64,000 nucleotides of DNA from Paraphysomonas bandaiensis (GCA_965644295.1 CBFFRP010000399.1:1-64000), one strand, 5' to 3'. Counted from the stretch's first letter, positions 34,919 to 40,404 are shown. Translations and numbers: made by a program. The notes: generated by a model from the sequence alone, not told the origin.

Positions 34919-35586
34919 TCAATGCTGAAGAGTGAATATAGAGTTGTGTTTCTGTTGCTCTCCTTAGAATACACTTCGTGTAGTATGTTGAGATGATAAC
35001 TTATATGTGTTGTGTTTTGGATTGTGACTATTACAGAAAGCGTCTTTGAAGGCAAGATATTCTCCGGACATTTCTCCTGATTTCAGTGCATTCCTATTCT
35101 TGCTTTCCAGTTGCAGTGTATAGGTATACGGCGGTATAGGTATACCGTATACCGATATACCATTTGTTCTAGATAAAATCATTCCTTCTGAGGGTGGTTG
35201 TGCATATCGATATTATCAATTAATATCATTGAAAAGTCATCGTTTTTTCAGTGCAAAGTGAAAAAAAGTGACTTTTTAATGAAAAAACGATAATTATTGA
35301 TAACCACCCCTGCTGTTTTTTCCCGTTTTGCGGATCTTCCTCTTGTTGAAAGAAATCGCGATATATCGCGAGTGATATGTCTGCATATCTACAGCAGTGT
35401 AGATATCGATGCATGGTACGCTACCAAGTATAGGGCCTTTCATTGCCATCAAGAGCTGACAATCACAATCATTGATTGTGGTGTATTTAATTAATGACAA
35501 CATATGTATTCTATAGATTTAGGCATATCTTTGCCGCTTAGTCAAAACACACCTATCCATTTCAAAAACACTTATACTTCTTAACT

Positions 35587-38500
35587 ATGAGCGCATTCTC
35601 TCAAGGCAGTGATCTGACTCAACTAGTGATCCGTGGGATCGATTTTGTTGATAAAAAACTAAATGAAGATCACCAGATCGATGACAAGCGATACTTTAGT
35701 GATAGAAAATGGTCGAAACCATATGTTTGTATTCCACATATGAGGAACTGCGGGGATGGAACGACATGCACTGTTCCACACCCTCTGATCTATCAAGTTG
35801 CTAATTCTTTCGGTGCATCATTTGGGGACGTTATTGAAGTGGGTAAAGGCCTGGTTCTTGATAATCCCGCTGCTGAGGGTGCTGTCATTACTGTCCTCAG
35901 TGGATCGCCTGGTTCTGGGAAGAGTTCTATTGCTTTGGCAGTGGGATATAGCATGGCAAGGGAATGTGCCTTTGACAATGAACAGCGAGGTCAGAACCTC
36001 GCCAGAAGAGGAAGACGTGGAGAACCAGCTGCAACGCTTAAACACTCGGGGTATGACGTAATTAGGTGGATGAGGATGGATCCCTCTCATATACACCATG
36101 AATGGATGCAATTCGCGCTGTCCCTTGGAATTAATTTTGGGGACTCTGACTGTAATTACAGTCATACAGATTCGGTCCACCCACAAGTTTCTCTATATCG
36201 TATTATTCAAGCCGTTTTCGATGTGCTACAGGACAAACATTTTTTGTTGATATTTGATGGTGTGGAGAGTTACGATTCAATACAGCATTCCTTGCCTCCC
36301 GTTGGAGAGTCATCTTGCGTTCGTAGTCTTTCAAGTGGATCCACTTCTTCGGCTGATCAGAATTCTAATAGCATACCTCGTCGACATGTGTTAATAACTA
36401 CCAATCACCTATCTCTTTCTGCAGAGCTACCTATAGGGGGCGTAACAGTGACTGCAATCACTGTTGGAAATCCTCCTGGTGACATGATTGGTAGATATGC
36501 AGAGAACACCTCGGAGGGGGTATTCACACCTGTTGAGAGTTGCAATTTCATCAAAAAACGAATGCAAAAGGTTATTTATAGTTGTTCCGGTAATTGTAGC
36601 GACTCGGAGTCTAGCACATTGATTCATCAAACTGCTATTCATGATTCGCAGATAAAGAAGGTGCAAAACGCCCTACGTGGGGATACGCATCCTCTTAGAC
36701 TGTCTATGGGTATGTCGTTATGGACGACAATCTTCAGAGAGGTGCACCAATCCATAACAATATCGCAAGACATTAAGCCTGGTAATTTTAGCACTGAATG
36801 CCTCACGAGTTGTATCGTTACTGCGACGGCGACTATGAAAGAGGAACTCATTGCACTCTCTCGACAAATGAGTGACGACTCCGATATAAGTAATGCGACC
36901 CCTCCAACAACTCCATCTCCCCAAAAGCGTAGACCTTCTGCGATAATGAACCGGGTGCGGGGGAAGGGAAGAGGAAAAGGCGAAGGTGAGGTACAATGGG
37001 TCTCAAACAAGGATACGAAAGTGTGCATGATCTGCGAGGGTAAGTTCAATATAACGAAGAGAAGGAAGCACCATTGCAGGGTATGCGGGAGATTGATTTG
37101 TGGTGAATGTAGTCCCAATAAAGCAATTGTTGAACCCATCAAAGATCTAGGGCCACAACGAGTTTGCGTGCACTGTGAAAGTAATATCAAGGTTAGTAGA
37201 GGTGTGGCATGCAGTCGTATGAATTCATTTGTTATGTCTCCTGAATATGCTGTGCATTCATATCTAATAGTGGCATTTTAAAAGGGTATCGCAAATGAAG
37301 TGTCGAATAGTCCCACTACTCATCGTCGAGGCAGCACCAGTAGCGTGGTCTCCACGTTGAGTCTTAAGTCAATGCATTCTAGAGACGACGAAAATCTTGA
37401 ACATCTGTCGTCTCCTTTGGCATTTGCCGGAGTGATCCCTTACCCTCGCCTCTCACGGCTTGTAAACTGTTTTCTTCAACACTTGAAGGTTATGCACCCC
37501 GCTACCCATCGCCTCCTAGGATTTGTAAGTCTATATGGCTCATGGCATATCCCGTTGTCCCTTTTGGATAAACTCTATGATTTAGCTGACCTAGAGAGTG
37601 ATTATACTGGAGACGATACCAAAGACCGCGTTCTGAACATATTACATCCTCTGTTAGACTTGCATATTGTGCGTTACGAGGAATCTGCCCTCTCTCAAGT
37701 TGATACTAGTCGCAGTCGTGTGTACCTCCACATTCACGCATTGTTGCAAAAAAGCATATGCGATTGCATTGTTGGGCTGATACTGTTCCACTCTCCATTT
37801 GCAGAATCAACTGTTGGGTTGACGTCTTCGCATAATGTATACCCTGCGGATATATTGGACACATGGCTGCATCCAGTGGTGCGAGCTCTAGATAGTGTTT
37901 ATGGTGTACATAGTAAGGCTAAAGACAGAGACATTGTGAGTGCTCTCGCAGTCCATACCGCAAAGTTAATCCAGATTCTGGAGGGAAATGTATTCCATTC
38001 TTTAACACGTGCGAACTACCTTCGGATAATTTTATACTTGCGCATGGGAGAGAGCCTGTGTGCACAAGGATGCCACCAAGAAGGTGCATCCCCACTACTA
38101 TTGCATTGCTAACATGTGGTAGACGTCAAATATAGTGCTATATGTATATATATATCGATGCATACCCTCCTTGACCGTATGGCGGTAGTGTGCTTTAGTC
38201 TTGGTTGCGCTGTCTCAGTCTTTTGTGTGTGTACATAGGTTTGGCGTATTTCAGAAGACGACTGGTTTTGATTCATGAGTGCATGAAGTGGACAGGATCT
38301 GTGGATACAGAAGTGTGGGAGGATATGATGGGATCCGGTGCCCGCCTAGGGGGTCGAGAGGTGGGAAACACTCTCGTTGCTATTGCCAGGGTATTGGTAG
38401 TGCAGGGCCGAGTGGAGGAAGCAATTCGGACGTACACCGAAGCCATCAGTGCATATGGTTCACAGAATGGCTTACATTCAGCAAGATCCTATCGAGCGAT

Positions 38501-39629
38501 TGCTTCGCTAAATGAGAAGTCAGATAGTCTATTGGAGGCGATTCTTGCGTATAATTCAGCCATTGAAAATGAAACAAAACATTTTGCTAATTTTACAAAC
38601 ACAGATCAATGCGATGAAATTTATCCTAATCACTTGTTCAGCATGTCAAAGATGTATTACGCACTGGGAGGATTATACTGCCGCTGCGGTGATATGACCA
38701 ACGCTACGCAGAGTTATCAGAAATCTCTTCGCTTGGACAAGGAGTTATATGACGAAGGCAAGCTCTCAGCTCAAGAGTACGCGAAAGCTTTAAACAATAT
38801 GGGCGCAGTTCATTATCGTATGCAACTCATGGATGAAGCGCTGACGTTCTACCTCGACTCGCTAGCTATGGCGCGTGTTGTATATGCAGGAGACCATCAA
38901 GAAGTGGCGAAAACACTTTACAATGTAGGGAATGTCCAGCTGCTTTCTGGAGACCTAGATCATGCACTCCTGTCATTGAAGGAAGCACTTCGCATGTCCC
39001 GAGCGGTGTCTGGAAGTTGTAATAGTGATATCGGAAAGATATGGAATAATATCGGTCACGTCTACAGTGCTTTAAAAGATTATCCGGCTGCGGTACAGGC
39101 CTACGAACAGGCGTTAGATATGAAGAAACATACTAGAACAGATGAGGTATTGGTGTATCAAGTAGATATTGGAAAGACAATGAAAAATTTAGCCACTGCA
39201 TACACAAATGAAGGGCGTCATGAAGAAGCTCTCGAGGTACTACATGAGTTGTTACCTTCAATTGAAAGAAGGTTGCAGCAGTGTGAAAGTACTGGTAGGA
39301 CGGATGCGGCAGCGGAAGAGGAATTGAAGGTCATAAAGAATTTAATTGTAACTACACGAGGTTTATCTGCCTATCGGAATGATATTCTGACAGAGTATTC
39401 GCGCTACATTGACAATAGAAAAAAACAAAAGAAGAGTGGAATTGGGTTTAGTAAACAGGCGAAATTGGATGCTGCCGAATTCGTTATTGATTATGTTAAG
39501 GCCCCTACATTTCGAAGACTTGAAGATATATCACAAACAGCTAATTATGACAAACACAAGGGGGCACTGTTAGATGGCCAACTTGGAGAAATGTTTAAGA
39601 GATTGTGTTTAAGACAAGCGGAAGAGTAG
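35587..39629 (+). CDS. NLR-like STAND protein: NB-ARC-like P-loop NTPase, FYVE zinc finger, winged-helix region, TPR array, C-terminal domain; exons 35587-37191, 37285-38083, 38239-39629
   Basis: Walker A GSPGSGKS, Walker B FLLIFDGV, HVLITT and HPLRL. FYVE WVSNKDTKVCMIC..F....RKHHCRVCGRLICGECS...RVCVHC. MHD-like HIHALLQ. KLC-type TPRs (ALNNMGAVHY, TLYNVGNV, IWNNIGHVY). Both introns are GT-AG and keep the frame. Confidence 0.88.
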
Positions 39630-40404
39630 ATATGTGAGAATCCATCACGGAGATATGACGATAAAATTTTATTTGTTTTTGTACTTTGTATATTCAGTAT
39701 TAATATGCCAGATAATATCTCGGTGTTCAACTAAAACATCATTTGTTTTGAACTTAGAGTACATTGGGTAGTGACACTTAACTACCTTGTATAGGGTTTG
39801 AATTATCTCATCAATTCATCAAATACTAATTTGCATGCAGAAGGAAAAACTTATATTCCACGACAGCGAAGTGTATTAGATTACAACTATGACACCAACT
39901 ACTGATGAAACAGTAGTATTAGGAAACTAAAGGATAGGCGTCCTAACAACGCACTGCTTGTTTTTATTTTCTATCACTTCGTGGATAATATGTTACGGAT
40001 ATTGCGGTGCTTTCCATTGATGTAATATATGTGTGCGTCGTTAAGTTTTAAGTTGTAATTGAAGTGTCCTGCGTGTTTTAAAGTTACATTATTATACGCA
40101 ATAATTCTTATTTGAGATTATTTGAATTCAGCAACAATACGCCATCAAGTAATATTAAGGATCATTGATTCACGTATATTCCTTAACGCGTGAATACAAC
40201 AAGATAATACAATGAAATATCAATTGACAGCGCATCATATAGAAAAAATGAAATGAGTACATCTAACTTATTACCAAAGTAGTACTGCTCTATGCTATAG
40301 TACCGCACATATTAGAAGTCAAGAACAATGGATTTTTAATGAATCAAACATCAAACACGCATGAAATTATGTATGTCTAGTTGAAATTTGAAATAAACCT
40401 TGCG

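Follow-up and report, generated by a model that had tools for sequence, protein, structure and literature searches.

A predicted NB-ARC-type STAND NTPase with TPR repeats and a FYVE finger at its hinge in Paraphysomonas bandaiensis

The DNA considered here is a stretch of 64,000 nucleotides from Paraphysomonas bandaiensis (GCA_965644295.1, CBFFRP010000399.1:1-64000), which corresponds to contig C399 of a 62.5 Mb genome (G000). We call this whole stretch the window and count all positions from its first letter. A gene on the plus strand, at positions 35587-39629, is expressed, and we suggest that it encodes an NB-ARC-class STAND NTPase fused to tetratricopeptide repeats (TPRs), with a FYVE zinc finger at the hinge of the NTPase module, which would act on membranes containing phosphatidylinositol 3-phosphate (PI3P). 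We put the probability of this reading, its functional part included, at about 0.6; a receptor role, PI3P tethering, a place on phagosomes or pathogen vacuoles and an immune role are inferences. The predicted protein consists, in this order, of an N-terminal remnant, an NB-ARC-type STAND NTPase, a disordered hinge with the FYVE finger, a winged-helix region with an MHD-like His, an array of TPR_12 repeats and a helical tail.

A single expressed gene with three exons

Three long open reading frames (ORFs) are found on the plus strand in the ORF listing of the window (35587-37281, 37300-38112 and 38205-39629). The introns were first placed by eye from the sequence and then compared with transcript contigs aligned to positions 35400-39800. 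Contigs from four public runs (X8, X9, X11 and X15, the last of which is a marine polyA metatranscriptome) contain exactly two joints, where 93 and 155 nt are removed, both with GT..AG borders and both at the predicted positions. The X8 contig covers 4,363 nt from 35473 and the X9 contig 4,308 nt from 35548, and both of them extend past 39800 with both introns removed. The spliced coding sequence has 3,795 nt and translates into 1,264 amino acids without an internal stop. The region 35587-39629 of the window is therefore one expressed gene of three exons with one mRNA, in agreement with the one spliced gene that a preliminary description of the locus, made from the sequence, had proposed.

The 5' untranslated region (UTR) extends over at least 35473-35586, as given by the starts of the two long contigs, and the first in-frame ATG is at 35587. 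Exon 1 (35587-37191, residues 1-535) carries the N-terminal remnant, the nucleotide-binding domain (NBD), the first helical domain (HD1), a linker and the FYVE finger, and ends at the donor GT at 37192; the joint 37191/37285 is present in all four runs. Intron 1 (37192-37284, 93 nt, phase 0) lies directly 3' of the finger. Exon 2 (37285-38083, residues 536-801), delimited by the ORF, the contig joints and the alignment, encodes a Ser-rich linker, the winged-helix domain (WHD) and a helical spacer. It is followed by intron 2 (38084-38238, 155 nt, phase 1), again found in the four runs, and by exon 3 (38239-39629). The stop codon and the 3' UTR occupy 39627-39800, the 3' UTR continuing past 39800 in the X8 and X9 contigs. 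We note an insertion polymorphism of 14 nt, TTTGTGGAATTCAT, at 39671 in the 3' UTR; it is present in X8, X9 and X15 and absent from the window and X11. No upstream exon is joined to the gene in the X8 and X9 contigs, thus the short N-terminus of the protein is real.

That two or three separate genes, such as one with the P-loop and the finger and one with the TPRs, had been wrongly joined is practically refuted, even though prokaryote-style ORF calling divides the locus into three ORFs and two relatives (P0003 and P0004) are deposited as truncated proteins, because single 4.3-kb contigs from independent runs cover all three exons with clean GT..AG joints and both introns removed; intronless paralogues also carry the same domain order within one ORF.

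The NTPase module and the finger at its hinge

The FYVE finger (36994-37191, residues 470-535) is recognised by Pfam PF01363 over residues 470-534 with E 8e-17 (61.6 bits, cut-off 27.8), and among PDB sequences it matches WDFY3, EEA1, endofin and Vps27 with E 1e-11 to 1e-10. All eight zinc-binding Cys and the RKHHCR and RVC motifs are intact, with the spacing of EEA1, WDFY3 and endofin. The preliminary description had placed a complete FYVE domain at about 36997-37180, and this needs only a slight refinement of the borders.

In the MAFFT alignment of the family the finger and its flanks occupy one block between the last element of HD1 and the first helix of the WHD, so that the internal, not terminal, position of the finger in the preliminary description is confirmed. 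The 5' flank (36889-36993, residues 435-469) is Ser/Thr/Pro-rich and then Arg/Lys/Gly-rich, and is delimited by its composition, by a predicted local distance difference test score (pLDDT) below 50 and by the hypervariable alignment block; the 3' flank is Ser-rich (residues 536-590). Together the disordered linker around the finger amounts to about 100 residues. None of the six relatives in this alignment has a FYVE finger, and they show at this place a short linker or an unrelated Ser/Arg-rich stretch. Hence, by the alignment, the finger is a lineage-specific insertion at the hypervariable HD1-WHD hinge of one paralogue. Other FYVE fingers of the genome are at best 45-48% identical to it, thus no recent donor is visible.

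The nearly identical copies that other runs contain stem from the same organism or from very close ones. Coding differences between close strains number 19, about 11 of them non-synonymous and 8 synonymous, and the finger holds a single one, which is synonymous. This weakly suggests constraint on the finger within a protein that otherwise evolves fast.

The N-terminal remnant (35587-35871, residues 1-95) is aligned with the paralogues and the metagenomic relatives, of whose N-domain of about 250 residues it retains the RGIxxID and CGDGxxC motifs. It is followed by the NBD (35872-36486, residues 96-300), which is delimited by profile comparison (hhalign), the core of the structural model and the fold matches to NRC3, Apaf-1 and CED-4. 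The NBD contains the Walker A motif GSPGSGKS (35902-35925, residues 106-113), the Walker B motif FLLIFDGVES (36241-36270, residues 219-228) and the sensor-1 position HVLITTN (36385-36405). The core of Walker B, LLIFDGVE (residues 220-227), has Asp 224 and a Glu at +3, which is comparable to the LDNxE of a set of bacterial NB-ARC proteins. Two low-complexity inserts in the NBD are specific to the FYVE gene.

HD1/ARC1 (36487-36888, residues 301-434) is placed by the family profile against the NB-ARC set and by VIA-align alignments. It has a degenerate GLPL motif at 36679-36717, where GDTHPLRL begins at residue 365 and GLPL reads THPLRL. After the hinge follows the winged-helix region (37450-37794, residues ~591-705), with LLGFVSLYGSWHIP at 37513-37554 and the MHD-like VYLHIHALLQ at 37720-37749; in hhalign this family block, with WHD and MHD, pairs with the WHD of the bacterial NB-ARC set. 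In LHIHALLQ (residues 683-690) IHA stands at the MHD position and retains the His. The TPR array (38239-39314) consists of kinesin-light-chain-like TPR_12/TPR_10 repeats, with TPR_12 above its Pfam cut-off (E 1e-39, 134.9 bits over five stretches) and TPR_1 at E 1e-28. The Walker A and B motifs, the HPL motif, HIHALLQ and a TPR array 3' of the NTPase module had all been read from the sequence in the preliminary description, and each of them is found at or near the place given there. Pfam finds no effector domain in the N-terminus of the FYVE gene, which is the 95-residue remnant, and with no Pfam domain and no upstream exon the tripartite build of an NLR (nucleotide-binding leucine-rich repeat receptor), with its N-terminal signalling domain, is absent. 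For this reason 'NLR-like' is used here as a label of architecture only.

The relation of the NTPase to NB-ARC is best seen at the level of the family. Two paralogues of the FYVE gene (L013 and L014) exceed the Pfam NB-ARC cut-off of 23.5 bits, with 54.8 and 25.6 bits. When the family alignment, the FYVE gene included, is compared by hhalign with 12 bacterial proteins that carry Pfam NB-ARC, the probability is 99.3% and E is 1.4e-20, and the 291 matched columns start at the P-loop, include GLPL and the WHD and reach as far as the MHD position. The NBD of the FYVE gene alone reaches 93.5% and E 2.3e-7 against the same set. Exon 2 alone, with the WHD, gives no significant match to it, although it is aligned at the correct place. 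Searching PDB sequences with the family NB-ARC profile by HMMER gave P-loop-level matches only (NRC1, E 0.04), so that profile-profile comparison is needed here.

Structure prediction and the searches based on it were run exon by exon. The AlphaFold2 model of exon 1 has a mean pLDDT of 63.9, with 84-93 in the core. Its best Foldseek matches are CED-4, Sr35, Dark, NRC2, NRC1, Apaf-1 and ZAR1 (E 5e-6 to 9e-4), and VIA-align gives Z 13-15 for NRC3, NRC4, NRC2, Apaf-1, ZAR1 and Dark. Model residues ~44-430 superpose in VIA-align on the NBD and HD1 of Apaf-1 (112-366) and of ZAR1 (151-397), which puts the end of HD1 near residue 430.

The tail, the family and the host

The C-terminal helical tail (39360-39626, residues 1176-1264) is a segment of about 85 residues that is conserved in all full-length members of the family. 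Several comparisons point from it to RavZ of Legionella. Against Pfam RavZ_C (PF22225) it scores 14.2-15.4 bits (E 0.026-0.063), which is below the gathering score of 27 bits, and one of eight family tails matches, solely that of the FYVE gene. A profile built from the eight tails and run against the whole PDB has RavZ as its best match (E 0.017), with the aligned motifs [FY]SKxxKxxAxxxLI and LxxGxLGKL. The model of the tail (pLDDT 88.6) finds RavZ at all of ranks 1-8 among 350,542 chains in Foldseek, with probability 0.69-0.99, TM 0.50-0.59, E 0.08-1.3 and 24-29% identity. VIA-align places it on RavZ residues 312-416 with Z 8.6-9.3 and 23-25% identity over 81-86 residues, the next protein being YchF at 7.8. 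A language-model atlas search with the tail returned nothing informative. We suggest, from these profile and model comparisons, that the tail is probably related to the C-terminal domain of RavZ.

RavZ (PDB 5cqc, 5izv and 5ms2) is thus the top match of the tail in Pfam, in the PDB profile search and in the fold search. It differs in that its domain adjoins a cysteine protease, whereas the domain described here adjoins TPR repeats in a eukaryote. The C-terminal domain of RavZ is reported to be a PI3P binder that is indispensable for binding to membranes (PMC5388539, which cites Horenkamp 2015). If the likeness is read in this way, the shared RavZ_C-like tail favours the PI3P idea. We also note two TPR-only proteins of 357 residues with the same tail, on contigs C214 (L020:3800-4873, minus strand) and C80 (L021:3335-4405, plus strand); the latter gene lies about 5 kb downstream of an NB-ARC-TPR paralogue.

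The family, a small and fast-evolving one of protists, comprises three paralogues in the genome, the FYVE gene included, and four metagenomic relatives. The two other paralogues are intronless and lie on contigs C80 (L013:5281-8379, 1,032 residues) and C69 (L014). Both have the P-loop, LLxFDxV, xxITT, GLPL, the MHD-like His, the TPRs and the same C-terminal tail. A phmmer search with residues 1-465 against 1.84 billion cluster representatives returned six relatives, none with a FYVE finger, and four of the six (P0001 to P0004), all metagenomic, clearly belong to the family. A search with the family-alignment profile for a full-length copy in the databases was swamped by TPR proteins, and the tail of a paralogue as query returned solely the paralogue's own fragment. 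In the tree the eukaryotic family is monophyletic with support 100/99, and the FYVE gene has the longest branch (1.38). Its sister is not settled by the tree; by identity the C69 paralogue (35%) is nearest.

P0004 (829 residues; JGI contig L015:6001-9815, also L016 and L017) was deposited truncated, and an ORF of 423 residues with TPRs and the tail begins 54 nt further on. The gap between them is a GT..AG intron that matches intron 2 of the FYVE gene in both position and phase; here L015 reads HQK-G|GTGTGT...GCAG|G. A conserved helical N-domain of about 250 residues is found 5' of the P-loop in P0001, P0003, P0004 and L014; that of P0004 has no Pfam match. It may be the signalling domain of the family, and the FYVE gene retains just its last ~60 residues.

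Proteins with NB-ARC (PF00931) and TPR_12/TPR_10 repeats are already known from bacteria, fungi and algae. The protein described here shares with them the NBD-HD1-WHD order followed by TPR_12-type repeats, as well as the D-x-x-E form of Walker B seen in the bacterial set. It differs from them in the FYVE finger and ~100-residue disordered linker within the nucleotide-binding oligomerisation (NOD) module, in the RavZ_C-like tail 3' of the TPRs, in the lack of a recognisable N-terminal effector or DNA-binding domain and in a sub-threshold Pfam NB-ARC score. To Apaf-1, CED-4 and the plant NLRs (NRC, ZAR1 and Sr35) the likeness is one of fold over residues ~44-430, together with the P-loop, the GLPL-like motif and the MHD-like His. 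However, identity is 10-17%, TPRs replace the WD40 or leucine-rich repeats (LRRs), CARD, CC and TIR domains are missing, and a domain is inserted at the HD1-WHD hinge. With the FYVE proteins EEA1, WDFY3/ALFY, endofin and Vps27/Hrs the finger has in common the eight zinc ligands, R(R/K)HHCR, RVC and the same spacing, but it is embedded in a STAND ATPase and not in a trafficking scaffold, and the Asp of WxxD is Asn.

STAND/NLR switches are usually viewed as soluble sensors, with extra domains at their ends. A table from 2010 lists one plant protein that combines FYVE with TIR, NB-ARC and LRR (PMC2837644, supplement 2). FYVE is also present in two NLRs of Sordariales in a fungal survey, where zinc fingers are C- or N-terminal (PMC12258605). 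As in these NLRs with integrated domains, FYVE and an NLR-type NTPase are here in one polypeptide; unlike in them, the finger is within the NOD module of a protein from a marine protist, and a paired helper is not evident. In the open literature we found no description of FYVE, or of any folded domain, inserted between HD1 and the WHD, and none of a RavZ_C-like tail on NB-ARC-TPR proteins. The view of the preliminary description that the architecture is undescribed has to be narrowed accordingly, from the pairing of FYVE with an NLR to its place at the hinge.

Marine metagenomes and polyA metatranscriptomes contain the stretch itself. Silicon-transporter loci (PF03842) number at least seven in the genome, and the LHC (PF00504) and PsbO (PF01716) models find no match in it, though such an absence calls for caution. 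The host thus seems to be a silicifying marine protist without photosynthesis, which makes phagotrophy plausible.

Some further loci of the genome are noted here. A row of virus-like genes lies on contig C79 (13000-21000; L025, minus strand), with ORFs of 487 and 239 residues without Pfam match, Lys/Glu-rich ORFs and a packaging ATPase of Pox_A32 type (241 residues, E 1.8e-11). The same short P-loop match to the NB-ARC model occurs on contigs C486, C380, C195, C662 and C51; rather than NB-ARC genes, these are probably integrated copies of a polinton-like or virophage-like element. Most 'NB-ARC' matches of the genome with frames of 260-290 residues were rejected as NB-ARC genes, as they are apparently viral A32-type packaging ATPases, which is confirmed for C79 only. 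A protein of 769 residues on contig C351 (L024:3636-5942, minus strand) combines a few TPRs with a canonical NB-ARC (25.4 bits in Pfam, Walker B VLDDIW), and forms a lineage separate from the family of the FYVE gene. Directly upstream of the NB-ARC-TPR paralogue on C69 there is a perfect 12-nt microsatellite of about 0.7 kb (L014:4150-5080), which has several open frames and reads as (TYIH)n or (CMYV)n in translation.

Proposed mechanism and alternative readings

In STAND proteins generally, the module is an ADP/ATP switch. At rest the His of the WHD contacts the nucleotide and the repeats keep the protein closed, and opening around the HD1-WHD hinge permits oligomerisation. A single FYVE finger binds PI3P membranes weakly and needs avidity.

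We suggest that in the protein described here the NB-ARC module would serve as a nucleotide-dependent switch and as an oligomeriser, with the WHD His and the TPR array keeping it closed. PI3P would be bound by the finger and probably also by the tail, and because of this the protein is proposed to work on PI3P-positive endosomal, phagosomal or autophagic membranes. Stable residence on the membrane would come from the avidity of several weak lipid binders, either within the chain or across an oligomer. Lipid binding and switching may be coupled, as the finger sits on the hinge that opens at activation. The output might be immune-like, or it might lie in trafficking or autophagy.

A bolder version of this mechanism can be drawn, which we consider distinctly doubtful. 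Here PI3P would be read by two unrelated modules, lipid binding at the hinge would help to open the ATPase, and a resistosome-like oligomer would assemble only on the membranes of phagosomes or pathogen vacuoles of a bacterivorous protist. As a corollary, the PI3P domain of RavZ would descend from protist TPR/NB-ARC proteins.

Several observations weigh against our reading, that of an NB-ARC-class NTPase acting on PI3P membranes. The Pfam NB-ARC model (PF00931) has no match on the FYVE gene at E<=1, where only AAA_16 is found (E 0.004). The STAND NTPase claimed in the preliminary description holds by the family profile and the fold matches, while the FYVE gene itself stays under the Pfam NB-ARC cut-off. 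ORC/Cdc6 and proteasomal AAA+ ATPases (Mpa) come within 1 Z unit of the NLRs in VIA-align, so that fold alone does not separate STAND from AAA+, and the assignment to NB-ARC/STAND rests on the family-level sequence profile. Hence the structure check around GSPGSGKS and FLLIFDG proposed at the outset gives a CED-4/NRC/Apaf-1-like fold with which AAA+ folds nearly tie. The sensor-1 Arg (TTR) is Asn (TTN) in the FYVE gene, as Arg is also lost in four of the six relatives, GLPL has degenerated, and the Asp of Walker B is followed by Gly, with Glu at +3. Because of these deviations and of the longest branch in the family tree, the NTPase of the FYVE gene may be slow or dead. In the finger WxxD reads WVSN, with Asn for Asp, and the FYVE stretch of the exon-1 model has a pLDDT of 35-45 and is unreliable, since the underlying alignment does not cover it. 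No orthologue with a FYVE finger was found in the protein collections (phmmer with residues 1-465; exon 1 as query) or in JGI metagenome contigs (HD1-FYVE stretch), so that conservation of the arrangement cannot be shown. Finally, the statistics of the tail are marginal, with E 0.017-0.08 and Z ~9, and YchF at 7.8.

Three other readings of the function have to be weighed. In the first, which is unlikely but survives best, the protein is a housekeeping scaffold of membrane traffic or autophagy, a STAND-TPR ATPase that organises complexes on PI3P membranes without sensing non-self. Such a role agrees with its expression in ordinary culture transcriptomes and in ocean polyA metatranscriptomes with no known infection, with an N-terminus that has no death-fold, TIR or other effector domain, and with TPRs of the kinesin-light-chain/NPHP3 kind, which bind cargo peptides; the tail is also common to TPR-only proteins. 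However, just 6 of the 1.84 billion cluster representatives match, which marks a very narrow and divergent family, and its lineage-specific paralogues, long branches and ratio of ~11 non-synonymous to 8 synonymous differences are unlike core trafficking machinery.

In the second reading the finger is an integrated decoy, copied from a PI3P-binding protein of the host that is targeted by pathogens, and an effector that binds or modifies it at the hinge would release autoinhibition as in plant NLR-IDs (NLRs with integrated domains). The insertion is lineage-specific, sits at a hypervariable site of a fast-evolving NB-ARC-TPR paralogue and has parallels in FYVE as a non-canonical NLR domain of one plant and two fungal proteins, and the virus-like insertions in the genome speak for pathogen pressure. 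Yet the motifs for PI3P binding are intact and the finger is seemingly conserved between strains. A probable PI3P-binding tail was already present in the family, and targeting agrees with this better than bait does. The gene has no helper or paired NLR next to it, and no effector is known. We regard a decoy as rather improbable.

The third reading, which we hold to be very unlikely, takes the gene for a decaying paralogue, whose NTPase no longer switches and which is a passive FYVE-TPR adaptor at most or is heading for loss; the insertion at the hinge would then be tolerated because the module is dead. Several low-complexity insertions in the NBD, the loss of the sensor-1 Arg and of the N-domain, the degenerate GLPL, the branch of 1.38, the failed Pfam NB-ARC match and the relaxed ratio of non-synonymous to synonymous differences are in line with decay. 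Against it, the frame of 1,264 codons is intact, both introns are precisely spliced and the transcript occurs in several studies, and the gene retains every FYVE ligand as well as the Lys of Walker A, the Asp of Walker B and the MHD-like His.

Last, we return to the NB-ARC-class STAND NTPase with a hinge FYVE as the reading that we prefer. Only one species complex is known to have the arrangement, whose function is what we infer. Within these limits, a lipid-reading finger on the activation hinge, together with a second probable PI3P reader, would provide a concrete model of how a protist may couple the identity of a membrane to the NB-ARC switch. If the relation holds, the presence of a RavZ_C-like domain in proteins of eukaryotes would also bear on the origin of the module of the Legionella effector.

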